In this document: one piece after another, positions 4,587-22,062 of the stretch | How the letters are laid out: each line of letters starts with the position of its first letter | Numbering within the stretch: position 1 is the stretch's first letter | NCBI GenBank assembly: GCA_010909165.1 | Contig: VJWM01000007.1 | Location: 248,001 to 312,000, forward strand | Reading direction: 5' to 3' | Length of the DNA: 64,000 bases | Source of the DNA: Anthoceros angustus | Lineage: Eukaryota > Plantae > Anthocerotophyta | Made by a program: the position numbers and the translations under genes | Notes under the pieces: generated by a model | What the model saw: the letters and a program-made list of their open reading frames with translations, nothing else | Databases searched by the model: none | Told to the model about the DNA's origin: nothing

Positions 4587-6732
4587 ATGGACACTGCAGC
4601 AAGTGGGCCGCTTTGGCAGGCAGCGTCCATTCCCTGGGATCACAGCATCACGGAAAAGCCTAGTGCTGTTGTAATGCAGCCTCCTCAGCGTCAACCACGC
4701 CTCTTGTTTGCAAGTTCAAGCCACAATGGCGAATTCCCCTTGGCTGCCAATCCACAGATAGTGCTACACGTCCTCAGCGAATGTCATCTTGACCCACAGG
4801 ATCTTGGTCGACTCGAGGCAAGTGCTATATGATTTGATACAGCTGCAATGGTTGTTGTCAGATAGATGCCTCGCTGCATAATGATTGACTTTATTGTCCC
4901 TAAGTTTAGAGCGTTACTAGGTCACTTTGTCACCTCATGCTTTGGCCTTGTCATGTCTGCTTTCTCATAAGTCACTCGTGATGCTTGTGTGGTGCAGGCT
5001 ACATGCCAATTCTTCAGGCAACCTGCGAATTTTCTGCCAGATGTCACACTTTCATTGTCTGAGCTTGCTGCACTGGACATGTGCAAGAGGAGAGCGATTT
5101 TCAAGCCTATGACTTCTGAAGACAGGGAAGCTATGAAACAGCAATGTGGCGGCTCATGGAAGTTGGTTCTCAGATTCTTGAAAGCGGGGGAACAGTGCTA
5201 CAGGCGGGAACAGTTCCAAGCCATAGCAGGTCCTGGGCACAGCATTGTCGTGTCAAAATCTGGCTCAGTATACACGTTTGGTAGCAGTAACGCTGGACAA
5301 CTGGGTCATGGAACTGTCGAGGATGAATGGCGCCCTCGATTGGTCAGGTATGTTTCACCAGCTTGCAATGTGGTATAGGATTCAACAAGTGCAGTACCCT
5401 TTCTCACTAGTAACATGGGATCTTGAACCACATTTTTCAGGTCACTTTCAGGCATTCGCATCATCCAGGCTACAGCAGGTGTAGATCGGTCAATGCTAGT
5501 GAGTGACGCAGGCCGTGTTTATGCATTTGGTAAAGACTCCTTTGGGGATCCCGAGTATGGAGGACCAGGTTCCAAGAATGTCAGCACCCCGCAGTTGGTG
5601 GAGTCCTTGAACGGCATCTTTGTGGTCCAAGCAGCAATAGGAAACTTCTTCACAGCTGTGTTATCAAGAGAGGGGAAGGTGTACACATTTTCTTGGGGTT
5701 CAGATGCTAGAGCTGGTCATTCCACTCAACCTGAAGATCAGAAGCCCCAGTTGCTGAAAGGTGCTCTAGAAGATGTGCCTGTGGTGCAGATCTCTGCAGG
5801 CTATTGCTATCTGTTAGCTCTCACATGTCAGCGCAACATCATGTAAGCCTCATAAAAATCTTGAAGCACAGGGAAGATTGCTTGCATTCTCAGAATGTGG
5901 GAAGCAAGACCCTAACGTGTTACCTGTTTTTGGATGCAGGCAAGTGTATTCTGTAGGTTGTGGACTGGGGGGAAAGCTGGGGCATGGAACTAAAACAGAC
6001 GAGAAGTACCCACGTCTAATCGAGCACTTCCAAAACATACAGCTGCAGCCTGTCGGGATTGCTGCAGGGGCGTGGCATGCTGCTGTGGTGGGTCTGGACG
6101 GGCGTGTTTGCACATGGGGGTGGGGTCGATTTGGTTGCCTGGGTCATGGCAATGAGGAGAGCGAGCCCTTGCCCAAGGTTATTGAGAGCCTTGAAGGTGT
6201 GAAAGCTGTCCACGTGGCTACGGGTGATTACACCACATTTGTTGTGGCTGACGATGGGGAGGTATTTTCTTTTGGATGTGGTGATTCCTCGAGTCTTGGA
6301 CATTCTTCCAGTCTTCGCCAGGTGCCAGCCTGTAATGAGGGCCAGGTGAGTTCCGAAATGTCACCTGATAGCCCTCGTATATATGTATCTCCGATGCAGA
6401 TGCCACCAGCCCCCCGAGCTTGTCACGTGCTTGTTTTGCAGGCAGCATCCTTGCTAATGTGGTGTGCAATGTTTGCCCTTGTGCAGCCTGCTGGGCAACA
6501 TGCGCATGTTCATCGTCCAGAAGCGGTGACAGCTCTAAGGCGGCCAGGTGACCGAGTTGTGCAGATTAGCCTGACAAACGCCGGAACGCTGAATGCCCAT
6601 ACGTTTGCACTGACGGAGTTAGGGAAGCTGTATGCCTTCGGGGCTGGGGCCAAAGGGCAGCTTGGCACAGAGCTGCTTGACAACAGCAGCGAGCGGAGCT
6701 CACCGGAGCTTGTGGAGGTGGAGTTGGTATGA
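4587..6732 (+). CDS. RCC1-repeat (UVR8-like) family protein resembling Arabidopsis At3g26100; multi-exon, first internal intron GC-AG (4818-4997)
   Basis: GEFPLAANPQIVLHVLSECHLDPQDLGRLE|ATCQFFRQPANF..., repeated GQLGHG/GKLGHG/GCLGHG RCC1 blades, AAGAWHAAVVG, stop TGA 6732. A possible upstream in-frame micro-exon at 3259-3265. Confidence 0.92.
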
Positions 6733-7135: not shown

Positions 7136-7412
7136 GCTTCTTCTTGGTGTTAAGTTGTCGGGACATTTGAATTCGAAAAGGTAAAAGTTTTGGCGGCGCA
7201 ACGCTCCAGCGTCCGATAGGAAAGCGTTATCGGCCGGCGAGGGAGAGCCTACTGCCGTCCCTTTTGGTAGTTAGTAAACTCGGCGTCCGAGTGCGACGCG
7301 ACCTGGAGCGTTGCAAACTCATTACCGGGCGTTCCGGTCTCAGTGGCGTCGACTTGACTGGACACTAGAGTTGGTCAGAGGGTGCGAGGGATCTCCACTG
7401 CAGGGGAAGGCA

Positions 7413-9084
7413 ATGAAGGCCAGTGCTGTCTACTCGCTCATCTCGCTCGCCTTCTTGGCGCTTCTCTTCTTCTCCAAAGACCCCGAGGTGGGACGGTCGC
7501 ACCGCCGCCATGGCCCGGGCCGCCGCCTGGTGGTGCGCACCAAGCTGCTTCCTCCCGGCCGCCACCGAGCTGCAGCCTTCGATCCCATCGTGGCCGAGTA
7601 CGAGCAGCGGCGGGAGGAGCGCTACTGGGAGCAGCACCAGCCCAAGCACGCCATGCCCATGGAGTCGCAGCCGGATCCCTTCGACTCTAACGACCCGGAC
7701 TACTTCGAGGACGAGGACTATCTGAACGACGAGTACCACTTCAATCTCACGCAGCGCCTGCACTCCTTGTTCCCGCTCATCGACACCGATCACGACCACA
7801 CCATCAGCTTGCGGGAGTTGGAGGATTGGCATGTGCAGCAGGGGCTCAAGGCCGCCCGCCATCGCTCCGATCGGGATTTCAAGGCGCACGATGCGGACCA
7901 CGACGGCCGGGTCACCTTCGCCGAGTACCTGCCGGAAGTCACGCAGGAGCAGATCTGTACGGCAGTCTTCTCCGATGCCTTGCCTGCCGTCACGTTCCGT
8001 TCCTGCTGTGCGCTTAGGGCAACGCGCGTTGGTTGCCCCGGGACCCGCTAACACCATTCAGGTCTTGGATGCCAGCGAATAACAGCATGGAGCATGGTAG
8101 CGCAAGATGGTGGAAAGAACAGTTTGATCTTGCAGATGAGGACGGAGATGGAGCACTCAATTCGGCGGAGTATAACAGGTGTGGTGCCGCGTCATCTTGT
8201 TTCCGGTTGCGCAGTGACCGCCCCTGTGTCCTGCCCTGACTCCTCGTTATTGGACTCCGCAGCTTCCTTAACCCCGAAGACAGCAACAACCCTAAGCTAC
8301 GTGTCTGGCTTCGAAAGCAGGAGATTTTGTAAGTTCCCTTGCCCTAACGTACGTCATTTTCGCTGGCTGTTCCAGAAGCAAGCTTGAAGGATGTGTCACG
8401 TCGAGAAAAGAATTGTGTACGGTTTGCAGTATGTACGAGCTCAAGGTGGTTCTTGGTTGTGCTTTTCTGAGTGGTACAGAGACCATGATACGGACAAGGA
8501 TGGCAAGCTAAGTTGGGTGGAGTTTGACAAGAATATGTATGCAACGTTGAGGGATCATGGGAGGGACGAAACTATCGGCTTGACCCATAGAGACCGCACT
8601 CCGGAAGAACGACGACTTCTGGCTTCACGGTCGAAATTCGAAGCCTTGGATGCAAATGGTGATAAGTAAGACCTCCTGTCCTCCCAGCAGCTTTCTTTGT
8701 TCTATCACAGTGTTCGTATTTCCGTCAGGAGGTTTTGTGCTGACAGTTTGCAACTCCCAGCTTTCTTACGGAAGATGAGTTGGAGCCCGTCCTGGATCAG
8801 CTGCACCCAGGGGAATCATTTTACGCTAAGCAGCAGGCAGAGCAGTTGATGCAACAGGTGCGCCATGTCCTGGAATCATGAGAAGCCAGTGCTGGAAACT
8901 GCCTGCAGAGGCTAGTATGTAGAGGTGTTACCATACTCTGATTACCGCTCTTTTCGTTTGTCAGGCTGATGAAAATAGAGATGGCTTTTTGACGGTGGCG
9001 GAGATGGAACGTCATCCATATGCATTCTATAGCACTGTTGTTGATGATGGAGATTATGACTACGCCCACCATGAGCTTCGCTAG
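7413..9084 (+). CDS. Secretory-pathway multi-EF-hand calcium-binding protein (calumenin/reticulocalbin-like), 6 exons
   Basis: Hydrophobic N-terminus MKASAVYSLISLAFLALLFF; EF loops DTDHDHTISLRE, DADHDGRVTFAE, DEDGDGALNSAE, DTDKDGKLSWVE, DENRDGFLTVAE; ends YAHHELR*. Confidence 0.9.
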
Positions 9085-9733
9085 TATTCACCACCAGGTG
9101 ACCCTGAAAGGCTCTCACTCTTTTAGTTGCTAGGAGGAGAACGTCAGTCAGACTGATAATTGACTACTCTGTGCTGACGCTCATCTGCTGCTATTGCAGG
9201 CGAGCAGATTTGTGCCACTGAATGATATGGTGACATAGAATGCGCGAGACCCCAGCAACTTGTGCGTTCAATTTTATCCGCCAAGAATGCAGTTGCGTTA
9301 TGCAGCAGAGAGGTATGTCCCTCGTAATCAGCACAAAAGCATCTGCAATGGGGCTAGCTGTCTTGCAGTTTACCTGATGTTTAATTTGGGGCAGAGCGTG
9401 GACTCTGGTGTTCTCCATACCGGAAAGGGAAAGCACAGCTTTAGATACGTGAAAGCTAACAAAGGGGGTTGACATGGTGGCCGCCAGGGGTGACCTCTCA
9501 ATGTACATGTACTTCCTCGTTCTGAGGATTTTTCCATTGCATTCATGGACGGGTGTAGACGGCATCCGATCCAAAAAGATCATAATGCCTTTTGCAGTCA
9601 ACCAGAACTGCAGAATCGCAGTTAGTTTAGCTAGCGTGCTAGTTAGTTTTCATATATCGATGGCAACAACCCATGCACTTTCTTTAAAATACGCTGGTGA
9701 GCCTACACATTCATGTCAAACATCCCGAATTTT

Positions 9734-10805
9734 TCACACAAATTTGACATACACACGCCCCGAGTTGGAGATCCTAGCAGGGAAGACCTGGCAAGCGAAG
9801 AAATGGTTAGACTAGAGGGACGGGTGGTGGGACAAGAAGCAATAACGAACGCGTAGCACACCTTTGCGTTCTGCTTGGGAGCCTTCTCCTTGAGGGTGCC
9901 TACCACCCACTGCAAAATGCCGTCCTTGGGGCAGTAATCCAAAACCTCCCCGTCCGCCAATCCAAAGTTTGTGTGGCACAAAGGACACTCAAGTCCTACG
10001 GCTCCATTTTCTGACTCACTTACCTGCACACACTCACGGCGGCGTGATGAGCACAGGCTAGACTTTCCTCACAGTGACGATGCTGCTGGAGCCTGAACCT
10101 GAAATCAAGCCTGTTTCTAGGCTACTGTCTTCACCTTGCCTTCAATCATCGGGAATTTGCAGGACGTGCAGTTGGCTTCGATACAGAAAAGAGCAGTGTC
10201 CCTCTTCACCAGCACGTATCTGGCATCCGATTCCCCATGGGCGTGTAACGTATCGGCCAAGAAGCTGCTTACACACTCGACGAATGCAGTGAAACAAAGG
10301 GGGCATTAATACCCTTGATTGTTGTGAATAATTGCCTTGTTCTTCTTCTCTTCTGTGAACTCTTCCGACGTGGATACCTGCACCAAGCAACACCCTCGCT
10401 GAGCTGGGCTAAGCTGGGCTGTATGCAGGCAGGTAGCAGCGCATGGACGGGCATCGGGCCCGGTACCTGCGCCCAGCCCTCGGTCGAATCCTCTCGACCC
10501 TTAATACGAGACTGCAGACCTGCTGCCGCTGCTTTCCTAGCATCCAGACCCCGGCCTTTCTTGGGAGGTCCTTGAGCGCACACCGTTGCTCGAGGTCGTT
10601 CCACGGGCAACGGCCAACACGTTTGCGTTGGCCCTAGCGGCACACCGCTGCACCAGTCACTGGACCAGCAGCCGAGCTGCCAGGACGACCATGTTAAGAA
10701 GGCACCTCTGATGCAATCTGTGCACAACAATGCAGTTCACGACGGAGCTTGGATGAGCACCTGTGAAGCGGAGAAACAGCCCTGGCTCGTCGCAACAGAG
10801 GCCAT
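9734..10805 (-). CDS. Putative plastid-targeted Rieske-fold protein with CxxC...CxxC in place of CxH...CxxH; 6 exons
   Basis: Spliced by eye: MASVATSQGCFSASQ|LGCWSS...RATVCAQG...EGWAQ|VSTSEEFTEEKKNKAIIHNNQG|YVLVKRDTALFCIEANCTSCKFPMIEGK|VSESENGAVGLECPLCHTNFGLADGEVLDYCPKDGILQWVVGTLKEKAPKQNAK|VFPARISNSGRVYVKFV*; all GT-AG junctions phase-compatible. Confidence 0.8.
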
Positions 10806-11048
10806 GACCGTCAACGCGCACGGCTGGGCACGGCAAACAGAGCCTCAAGGATAGCGGCACATCGAGGACAGTAAGGTGGGGCCGCCGCCATACTGGATAG
10901 GAATCCAGCGGCCAGTCGCCCAACAAAGTGGAATAACACCTGCACTTTCTAACTCTCGTCTTTCTTCTAATGTTGTGTGTGAATTTCTATAGTCTTCCGC
11001 AGAGGAGGGAGAAATGCCACCCTCCGGCCATAAGGATGCCATTCCAAC

Positions 11049-12558
<1,510 letters not shown>

Positions 12559-19311: not shown

Positions 19312-22062
19312 ATGCTGTCCGCGGGTGCGAAGCATGTTCGTCGCGTCAAGGTGAGAGCACGGATCCCGCTTCCGGCACGGTCCAGCTGAATGGTTCAGTT
19401 GTTTGGAATGTGCGTACTCATGTGGACATCTTGGAGTGCAGCGCGCAGCGCAAGTCACCAGAGAAATTACGAATAGTGCCATTTTGAGACAGGCCGTGCC
19501 AGCGGTAGTGAAATCTCCTCCGTCTGGAGGGTTGTTGTCATGGTTGCTTGGTGATACTCCCAAGAATGTGTTGCCGCCCTTGTTTGAACCCTTACCAGGG
19601 GTTCGTCTACCAGAGCCGCTGCCTGATGATGTGAAGCCCTCCAAGACCAAAATCACGACGCTTCAGAATGGTCTCAAAATCGCTTCTGAAGAGACTCCGG
19701 TACTTGGGGCCACTGCTCTCCTGGATTACTTCGTTTCTGTTCTCTGGAGTTCTCAGATTTGAAGCTAGTTGTCGGCATGCTGATCCTGCGCCCTTTTCGT
19801 GTAGGGTCCAACTGCGACCATTGGAGTGTATGTGGACAGTGGGTGTGTATATGAGAACCCAACCAATTGTGGAGCTACTCATCTCTTGGAACGAATGGCG
19901 TTCAAGAGCACGAAGAATCGGTCTCATTTTCGTTTGATCCGTGAAGTAGAGGCAATTGGAGGAAATGTGACAGCTTCTGCATCCCGGGAGCAAATGGCGT
20001 ACACCGGTGACACCTTGAAGACATTTTTGCCTGAAATGGTGGAGATCCTTCTGGATACTGTCAGAAATCCTGTCTTCCACGAGTGGGAAGTGAAAGAGCA
20101 GTTGGCCAGAGTGAAAGCTGAGCTTGCTGAAGTGGCAAACAATCCGCATAGCATATTGTTGGAGGCCTTGCATTCAGCTGGGTATTCTGGTGCTCTTGGG
20201 CAAACTCTTTTGGCCCCCGAATCATCTCTGGCGAGGCTGAATGGTGCAATTCTTCAAGAGTTTGTTGCAGTAAGTGGTTTGCAGCTTTAGAAAGGACTGC
20301 CGATTTCTCAGGGCAATTAGCAGGGTAACGCATATCTGTAGGGGTTCATGGGATCTGGTCCTTCGTTCTGTCTTGTCTGCAGGAAAACTTCACAGCCCCA
20401 AGGATTGTGTTGGCAGCGTCAGGTGTTGACCATGAAGATTTGCTGTCTACTGCGAAGCCTCTCATTGAAGATCTGCCTGCAGGCCCTCCGCCATCAGTTC
20501 CAAAATCCAAGTACACGGGTGGAGACTGGCGTCAATCTGTTGAATCCCCGGTCAGTTTTATGAACAGCATGCTCACCGTTGTTGCTCGTATGGTGGGGGG
20601 TGATTATCTTGCTGGATTTCACTATGTGGATCTGTCTTTCACTTGGTTTGTATACTGAGAGAGTAGACCGTTGTGTTTGTGTACTCTAGAAAACGCATGT
20701 TGCATGTGCTTTCGAAGTTCCAGGTGGATGGCGAGATGAGAAGGATTCTGTGACAGTGACAGTATTGCAGGTGATTCTGGTCTTGCTACTGTTTCGATGC
20801 ATGTCACGTCAGCTATTGTCTTTATCAGGACTCTGGTGTGCAGCAGGAGATTTTAATTTGTGGCTTGGTTCCTTATTTCCTTGCGCTGACAGACACTCCT
20901 TGGTGGAGGTGGATCGTTTTCTCCTGGAGGGCCTGGCAAGGGGATGTATTCTCGATTGTGTAAGTTGCGTTCATTCATTTTTGTGAGCAAGCTGGTACGA
21001 AATCCAAGCATCAGTATGGCTGCATGACGTTCTTCCGACATTCATCATCTCGTCTCATGTTGTTGATCATTAGATACCCGAGTACTGAACAAGTATGAGA
21101 AAGTGCAATCCTTCACTGCCTTCAGCAGCATATACAATGAGAGTGGCTTATTTGGAATCCATGGCATTTCGGTAGGTTGCAGTTCACTGTATGACCATCG
21201 GGTTCTGGTGGATGATGGTTGCTGCAGTGGGTCTTTTGTATGGAAAAATGGCTGAGGGATGTTGGAAGTTTTCCCTACACAGCTGTGATGGTTCTTGTTC
21301 AATACATCTGAAGTGATTGTGAGTAATTTCTTCCATGTTGCAGGGTTCTGACTTTGTGCCTAAGCTTGTGGATCTAATTGCTAAGGAGCTGACTGCTGTT
21401 GCCTCACCTGGACAAGGTTGGTCTTCCAAACTGACAAACATTTAAGTGCACCTCTTTTGGATGACACATTGGTCGGCTTCCGGTTTCCTAAGGTCCCAGT
21501 GATTTCCGATTGCAGTGACTGAGTTGGAGCTTCGACGTGCAAAGAACACCACAATCTCAGCTGTGTTGATGAACTTGGAATCACGGGTCGGTTTACCTTT
21601 TCAGTTGAGCACATCAATTTTCTTGCATCGTGGGCTCCTAACTGGGTTACTGGTATCTCAGGTGGTTGCAGCTGAAGATATTGGGCGGCAGATCCTCACT
21701 TATGGCCACAGGTATTGGAGTCAATGCCTTCCCTGACTCTTCCCTTCATGTCTGTCAGATCAGGTGGGGGTGCCTCATTCTGACTTTGTCTCTGAATGGT
21801 TGGTACCCACCCATGGCACAGGAAACCGCCCGCCGAGTTCATTGACGCAGTGAACTCTTTAACTCTCAAAGACATCTCAGCTGTGGCAGAAAAAATCATA
21901 GCGACCCCTTTGACAATGGCTTCTTGGGGTGATGGTGAGACTCTAGTCATGCTACTGGGCTGTGCTTTTCACTACTCGTCACTGTGTGATTCTCACTTGT
22001 GCATGTGCTTTGCAGTTGTTCATGCCCCGGGATATGATTCGGTGTCTCGGCAGTTTTCGTAG
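19312..22062 (+). CDS. MPPA: Mitochondrial processing peptidase alpha subunit, multi-exon
   Basis: [27 protein letters not shown] (degenerate HxxEH), ASREQMAY, glycine-rich loop [39 protein letters not shown]. Confidence 0.96.

Follow-up and report, generated by a model that had tools for sequence, protein, structure and literature searches.

The Rieske fold is, in textbook descriptions, tied to a fixed site in which two cysteines and two histidines hold a [2Fe-2S] cluster, and the departures from this site that we know of are losses of ligands, as in NirD and PSB33. The locus at positions 9,734 to 10,805 of the window (the whole stretch of 64,000 nucleotides that was analysed) raises the question of whether a natural protein has kept the fold and replaced this site by four cysteines, and of what such a site would do. 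The reading that we favor, with a probability of roughly 0.6, is that the gene encodes a presequence, a basic tail and a Rieske-fold domain in which four cysteines hold a single zinc or iron ion, in a site that would stabilize or regulate the protein.

The initial annotation had proposed a gene of six exons on the minus strand that could not be recovered from any one open reading frame. This model and its coordinates were reproduced, including the translations of all six exons. No single ORF holds the whole gene, and the largest ORF overlapping it in the right frame covers exon 5 only. The features are as follows (E-values are those of single exon peptides against the family profile; His-1 and His-2 are the positions of the first and second histidine ligands of canonical Rieske proteins).

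10761..10805, minus strand: exon 1, holding the first 15 presequence residues, start codon at 10805-10803; the junction 10761/10676 is found in the X1 contig
10467..10676, minus strand: exon 2, completing the transit-peptide-like presequence (..TVCA) and continuing with the basic tail PPKKGRG..KAAA..GW; E=2.6e-13
10313..10377, minus strand: exon 3, the first predicted strands of the Rieske domain, ..KNKAIIHNNQ, with a split Gly codon at its end
10135..10219, minus strand: exon 4, a predicted strand and putative metal loop 1, ANCTSCKFP; E=3e-17; boundaries as in the L001 contig
10159..10170, minus strand: box 1, C-T-S-C; Cys1 at a Rieske Cys ligand position, Ser at His-1, Cys2 at His-1 +1
9862..10023, minus strand: exon 5, putative metal loop 2, ECPLCH, then a YCPKDG loop peculiar to the family and the helix ILQWVVGTLKEK; E=7e-27
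9973..9987, minus strand: box 2, C-P-L-C-H; Cys3 at a Rieske Cys ligand position, Cys4 exactly at His-2
9931..9933, minus strand: fifth conserved Cys, xCPKD, present in the alignments also in the chlorophyte clade that lacks the other four
9734..9787, minus strand: exon 6, the last two predicted strands, VFPARISNSGRVYVKFV, and the TGA stop

Transcript evidence was taken from contigs of public sequencing runs aligned over positions 9000-11600. The runs were only presumed to be RNA, but there is hardly another explanation for contigs that lack every intron precisely at GT-AG borders. A 5728-nt contig from one run, X1, is 100% identical to the window and removes exactly the five proposed introns, joining 9787/9862, 10023/10135, 10219/10313, 10377/10467 and 10676/10761. 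All five skipped pieces read CT..AC on the plus strand and hence GT..AG in the sense of the gene; the introns are 74-111 nt long. These junctions are also present in contigs from X2 and X23, which belong to two related organisms and are mostly ~90-95% alike, and the splicing that the initial annotation had left to RNA-seq is therefore carried by contigs of three related organisms. At position 9985 the relatives differ by TGT to TGC, a synonymous change in the codon of the Cys that opens box 2. Two small differences in length were observed as well. The intron-1 acceptor in X23 (organism D) lies 3 nt upstream, at 10679, adding one codon in frame, and organisms B, C and D have all lost one codon from the stretch of exon 3 that is rich in Glu and Lys, through a 3-nt deletion in frame at 10340.

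The exon structure is further delimited by comparison with a more distant genome and with the family itself. A genomic contig of a relative (L001, ~60-70% identical) holds exons 3-6, and exons 4 and 6 match it end to end; therefore at least the boundaries of these two exons are shared. When each exon peptide was searched alone against a profile of 27 family members, the matches were ordered and gapless (exon 2 at 53-91, exon 3 at 92-111, exon 4 at 113-140, exon 5 at 141-194 and exon 6 at 195-210), with E-values from 2e-6 to 7e-27. The ATG at 10805-10803 is the first possible start, since a TGA lies in frame 13 codons upstream, inside the same transcript exon as exon 1. This stop rules out a longer N terminus encoded by the exons that precede the gene in the merged contig. 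Another frame of exon 2, encoding an Ala/Arg/Ser-rich peptide, was also rejected; the chosen frame agrees with the PPKKGRG tail that the family conserves, and X1 has no junction within exon 2. The gene is real, nuclear and transcribed; it belongs to a streptophyte, probably a non-seed land plant, and encodes a protein of ~205 residues.

The X1 contig reaches neighboring genes on both sides, as can be expected of transcript assembly in a compact genome. It extends upstream, with minus-strand introns at 11135/11222, 11281/11358 and 11405/11510 (within 10806-11600). A separate upstream gene ends within ~250 nt of the ATG of the Rieske-like gene, with one ORF ending near 11049, and the two transcripts either overlap or were merged by the assembly. 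At the other end the contig shows a plus-strand GT..AG intron at 9095-9196, and therefore a convergent plus-strand gene overlaps or abuts the 3' UTR of the Rieske-like gene. An ORF of 113 amino acids at 9474-9815 gave no Pfam match. Three other long plus-strand ORFs or exons of the window match RCC1 repeats (5878-6732, Pfam E=3e-39), an EF-hand pair just below the Pfam cutoff (7311-8051) and a peptidase M16 / insulinase domain, likely a subunit of a processing peptidase (19826-20290, Pfam E=4e-38).

When 1.84 billion representative proteins were scanned with exon 5 by HMMER, there were only 24 matches, the full-length ones having 143-241 residues. Cluster look-ups and two profile searches placed members of the family in ferns (Adiantum, Ceratopteris), mosses (Sphagnum, Physcomitrium, Ceratodon), liverworts (Marchantia, Riccia, Calypogeia) and streptophyte algae (Chara braunii, Mesotaenium), and a more distant set in chlorophytes (Chloropicon, Coccomyxa, Pyramimonas, Myrmecia). 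Among the matches of the HMMER scan, the look-ups and the profile searches there was no protein from seed plants, Chlamydomonas or prokaryotes, and no characterized member. Summed over exons, the identity of the window protein is 54-64% to the fern, moss and liverwort members, 44-48% to those of Chara and Mesotaenium, and ~31% to the chlorophyte members. Together with a GC content of roughly 50% and the intron lengths of 74-111 nt, these identities suggest a lineage of non-seed land plants other than those represented among the matches.

The names that these proteins carry are automatic ones: "Rieske-like [2Fe-2S] domain-containing protein", "hypothetical" or "nitrite reductase/ring-hydroxylating ferredoxin subunit". 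In open-access text, a search turned up neither a study of the family nor any description of a natural Rieske-fold protein with four cysteines in the place of its ligands. The family is apparently unstudied, its proteins being already in the databases under such names. A word-index protein search with the exon-5 ORF gave no match, because of length limits and the requirement for exact words, and a search of the ESM Atlas with exon 5 returned only short clusters without names. One chlorophyte-type protein of 355 amino acids from [Myrmecia] bisecta (P0074) is annotated as a fragment of the ribonucleotide reductase large subunit joined to a Rieske_2 domain, and is probably a merge of gene models rather than a real fusion.

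The Rieske fold that the initial annotation had assigned to this protein was assessed on full-length homologs, together with the exon-wise mapping of the window gene, and both agree with the assignment. Six full-length homologs match PF13806 (Rieske_2) with 28.6-50.4 bits, the gathering threshold being 27, and homologs match PF00355 (Rieske) with 23-29 bits against a cutoff of 20.3, one chlorophyte-type member falling short. Exon 5 of the window alone reaches 13.6 bits with Rieske_2 (E=0.066), which is below threshold, and scans of the other single exons against Pfam and NCBIfam gave no match, because the exons are too short alone. Weak local Pfam matches to zinc-ribbon and treble-clef families cover the CPLC region in exon 5 and in homologs. 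A PDB sequence search with exon 5 alone returned zinc-finger-like matches, which were dismissed as chance.

An AlphaFold2 model of a homolog, P0006, computed with the family alignment, places the domain at residues ~78-203 with a pLDDT of ~96. The N-terminal 70 residues are disordered in the model, and its sole helix is only 10 residues long, with no long hydrophobic helix; therefore no membrane anchor is predicted. It agrees with the soluble character first suggested for the protein, in which no transmembrane segment was seen and which ends at the last strand of the domain, in exon 6. Foldseek comparison of the P0006 model with the PDB retrieved the red algal chain 8jng, NirD and Rieske ferredoxins with a probability of 1.00 and target-normalized TM-scores (TMt) of up to 0.86 (2qpz). 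In the ESM Atlas, searches based on shape and on features led to chlorophyte, diatom and cyanobacterial clusters of Rieske and Rieske_2 proteins. On these predictions the protein is a single soluble domain of the Rieske fold.

The presequences of the homologs diverge freely in the alignment, and conservation starts at ..[IV]-x-A / x-x-x-P-P-K-x-G-R-G, where the window protein reads ..TVCA / QGPPKKGRG. The transit-peptide-like N terminus ending in ..TVCA, as initially proposed, thus stops where the conservation of the family begins. Stromal processing sites of the V-x-A type are known, and ..TVCA fits such a site. Neither a twin-arginine signal nor a hydrophobic lumenal signal was evident in the sequence. 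The protein is probably located in the plastid, and the presequence would direct it to the stroma. The basic tail that follows is poorly ordered in the P0006 model and is replaced by KGFGLGTGTQK in chlorophytes; it is probably disordered.

To place the candidate metal ligands, profile-to-PDB alignments made with the whole family and with streptophytes only were compared over 2qpz, 5bok, 2e4p, 8jng and 3gce, and they agree on the streptophyte ligands. Cys1 and Cys3 fall on the two Rieske Cys ligands, Cys4 falls on His-2 and Cys2 falls one residue past His-1, a placement supported by three independent alignments. The initial annotation had read CxxC...CxxC in the place of CxH...CxxH, and the histidine ligands are indeed replaced by cysteines. 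In box 2 Cys4 takes the place of the histidine of the canonical C-x-x-H. In box 1 the residue at His-1 is Ser in the window protein and S, T, A or V across the family, and the additional cysteine comes one position later; a canonical C-x-H is absent. The His that follows Cys4, which is Gln in Mesotaenium, could serve as an alternative ligand. As aligned, the site is made of C-x-x-C and C-P-x-C, two knuckles of the rubredoxin or zinc-ribbon type, and not of C-x-C and C-x-x-C.

This arrangement has an engineered precedent. As described in the review PMC2946596, which cites Iwasaki et al. 2005, the H44I/K45C/H64C variant of ARF, the archaeal Rieske ferredoxin of Sulfolobus solfataricus, has the pattern CxxC..CxxC and forms a rubredoxin-like mononuclear Fe/Zn site. 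The loops that hold the Rieske cluster have themselves been likened to rubredoxin and zinc-ribbon knuckles (PMC2946596). Because the family carries the pattern of this triple mutant naturally, a mononuclear four-cysteine site is preferred over an all-cysteine [2Fe-2S] cluster. The most likely cofactor, by sequence and by analogy with the variant, would be one ion of Zn or Fe bound through four thiolates, and not the Rieske cluster; the sequence is equally compatible with either metal.

Both a mononuclear center and an all-cysteine, low-potential [2Fe-2S] cluster had been offered in the initial annotation, and the ARF variants favor the former. The latter would be housed in a scaffold that evolved around a [2Fe-2S] cluster, and the same review reports that ARF H64C assembles a [2Fe-2S] cluster with 3Cys/1His ligation and that a rubredoxin variant can acquire a [2Fe-2S] cluster (PMC2946596). 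However, in that review cluster assembly fails in H44C and largely fails in the double mutant H44C/H64C, and it is the CxxC..CxxC spacing that leads to the mononuclear site (PMC2946596). The displacement of Cys2 by one residue, moreover, gives the geometry of a knuckle and not the outward reach needed to bind a second iron. An all-cysteine [2Fe-2S] cluster is for these reasons improbable.

The single-metal site would be expected to leave a trace in the conservation of its ligands, a point that the initial annotation had also raised. In a motif census the four cysteines are present in 18 of 18 streptophyte members, as AN-C-T-x-C-[KQ]-F-P and C-P-L-C-[HQ], and essentially none is present in the chlorophyte sister clade. 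In the 16 chlorophyte-type members box 1 has no Cys and reads AN-S-[ST]-A-[FY], and box 2 reads V/T-P-L-D-G. The sole exception is P0076, an unnamed ENA protein of the chlorophyte type on a very long branch, which keeps the first Cys of box 2 (C-P-L-D-G), and this residue may have survived from a metal site of the ancestor. In an unrooted maximum-likelihood tree the states with four and with no cysteines are separated by one branch (support 100/100), and the difference therefore represents a single evolutionary event. As a consequence, the functional evidence lies in the invariance of the cysteines from charophytes to ferns amid varying neighbors, and not in repeated co-variation.

With respect to the polarity of this event, the sequences make it more parsimonious that a metal site was ancestral, rewired in streptophytes and lost in chlorophytes than that four cysteines were gained de novo. 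This scenario is preferred because 8jng has the canonical ligands, because 8jng alone aligns with the C-terminal part of the family, and because P0076 keeps a cysteine in box 2. The chlorophyte clade has two invariant cysteines of its own, in Y-C-T-E-A-N and W-C-P. The Cys at 10185-10183 of the window (F-C-I-E-A-N) matches that of Y-C-T-E-A-N, and most streptophyte members lack it.

The pattern of conservation also bears on whether the cysteines hold a metal at all. CxxC is a classic dithiol motif and, as is generally known, plastid stromal proteins are often regulated by thioredoxin; the pairs could accordingly form a metal-free thiol/disulfide switch, for example as a thioredoxin target, with a fifth conserved Cys nearby. 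Against this, two CxxC pairs, one of them C-P-x-C, on facing loops of the metal-binding subdomain are typical metal knuckles, all four cysteines are invariant together, and the Foldseek comparison of the P0006 model found no thioredoxin-like fold. We consider a switch of this kind very improbable.

If the site holds one metal, its use is still to be asked. Under the favored reading of a stabilizing or regulating site, the C-x-H and C-x-x-H ligands of a Rieske protein would have become C-x-x-C and C-P-x-C holding one metal ion, and this ion would stabilize or regulate the loops of a protein-interaction module of the stroma. The role as an interaction module is favored because the chlorophyte clade keeps the rest of the domain without the four cysteines. 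Such a core role would resemble that of partner-binding modules, since the Rieske-like domains of NirD and PSB33, whose ligands are also altered, serve in this way. To judge from the sequences, then, the core role of the family may not be redox, and a dedicated electron carrier is less likely.

An electron carrier must nevertheless be weighed, because the fold has a redox ancestry and 8jng is part of a photosystem megacomplex; with this descent and this relative, a redox role would fit at least as well as a structural one. In its most specific form, which is a sub-case of the mononuclear reading, the site would be a rubredoxin-type Fe(Cys)4 center and the protein a one-electron carrier with a thylakoid or stromal partner, that is, a natural rubredoxin built on the Rieske fold. 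The fold derives from electron-transfer ferredoxins, the loops that carry the ligands are found, like those of Rieske proteins, at the domain's exposed tip, and the ARF triple mutant, with the same ligand pattern, has a rubredoxin-like Fe(Cys)4 site (PMC2946596). On the other hand, that precedent is itself a mixed Fe/Zn center according to the same source (PMC2946596), and the conservation of the remaining domain in a sister clade that lacks the four ligands speaks against electron transfer as its purpose. The two-knuckle motif pattern of rubredoxin is present in the family, but the Gly that follows each second Cys of the rubredoxin knuckles is absent, being replaced by Lys/Gln and His/Gln. 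The rubredoxin Pfam family gave no match among the homologs at E-values up to 1, and the predicted fold is that of a full Rieske domain. We therefore regard an Fe(Cys)4 carrier as possible but rather unlikely. The same tentative standing is given to the wider scenario built on it, in which non-seed streptophytes would possess a Rieske-fold rubredoxin descended from a plastid Rieske ferredoxin, with an Fe(Cys)4 center serving the photosynthetic apparatus, the site having been lost in chlorophytes and the gene in seed plants.

Should that scenario be true, evolution would have repeated the ligand swap engineered in 2005. For the favored stabilizing or regulating site as well, the significance of the family is that a natural, conserved set of proteins carries a four-cysteine rewiring with the exact spacing that engineers showed to give a mononuclear, rubredoxin-like center, and the kinship of Rieske loops, rubredoxins and zinc ribbons becomes testable on a natural protein. 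The three states, canonical in a red alga, four cysteines in streptophytes and none in chlorophytes, provide a system in which the remodelling and the abandonment of a metal site can be studied. In addition, the analysis draws attention to a protein, unstudied and probably plastidic, of Physcomitrium and Marchantia, model bryophytes in which knock-outs are easy to obtain.

Among known systems, the Rieske-type ferredoxins of ring-hydroxylating dioxygenases (2qpz of naphthalene dioxygenase, BphA3 2e4p, CarAc 1vck) have the same single-domain fold, with TMt values of 0.75-0.86, and profile similarity to the family with E-values down to 7e-6; the two Cys ligands occupy the same positions, and box 2 has the same C-P-L context. 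The family differs from them in the absence of both histidines, His-1 being Ser/Thr/Ala/Val and His-2 being Cys, with the extra Cys at His-1 +1. It also adds the CPKDG loop and a 10-residue helix before the last strands, and its members are eukaryotic proteins that begin with a presequence and a basic tail. NirD, the small subunit of the NAD(P)H nitrite reductase (4aiv, 3c0d, 2jo6), is a strong structural match, and its family, Rieske_2, is the best Pfam family of the homologs. It gave up the Cys2His2 ligands, like the chlorophyte clade, whereas the streptophyte clade has four cysteines in their place. NirD is bacterial and has NirB as its partner; the present family is eukaryotic and nuclear, and its gene neighborhood is uninformative as to a partner.

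PSB33/TEF5 acts at photosystem II; its Rieske-like domain is stromal, has none of the ligands and is anchored by transmembrane segments (PMC12164590). Like the present family, PSB33 (also LIL8/TEF5) belongs to the plastid and to the green lineage, and it is placed under PF13806 in the plant literature. It is set apart by its description, in which metal ligands are missing and one or two transmembrane helices follow at the C terminus, and by its occurrence in seed plants and Chlamydomonas. The members of the family end right after the domain, with no C-terminal extension in the alignment, and were not found in seed plants; PSB33 was absent from the matches of the HMMER scan with exon 5 and of the family profile searches. 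The four invariant cysteines separate the streptophyte clade from a ligand-less domain of the PSB33 kind, a description that the chlorophyte clade would fit.

The best structural match of all (E=8.6e-7) is 8jng, named "methanesulfonate monooxygenase ferredoxin subunit", a chain in the in situ map of the megacomplex (PBS-PSII-PSI-LHC) of Porphyridium purpureum. It comes from an archaeplastid and has a similar length, and among solved chains it alone can be aligned in sequence across the C-terminal segment specific to the family (wCP...G.L...P..V..). As it is ~23% identical to the family and keeps the canonical C-P-H and C-A-Q-H, 8jng can be considered a relative and not an established ortholog. 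The closest likeness in the ligands themselves is to ARF H44I/K45C/H64C, where an identical pattern stands on the same scaffold and the Cys of loop 1 is likewise moved one residue past the His (PMC2946596). That variant is a laboratory construct of an archaeal protein, whereas the streptophyte family, known here from sequence, is natural and conserved.
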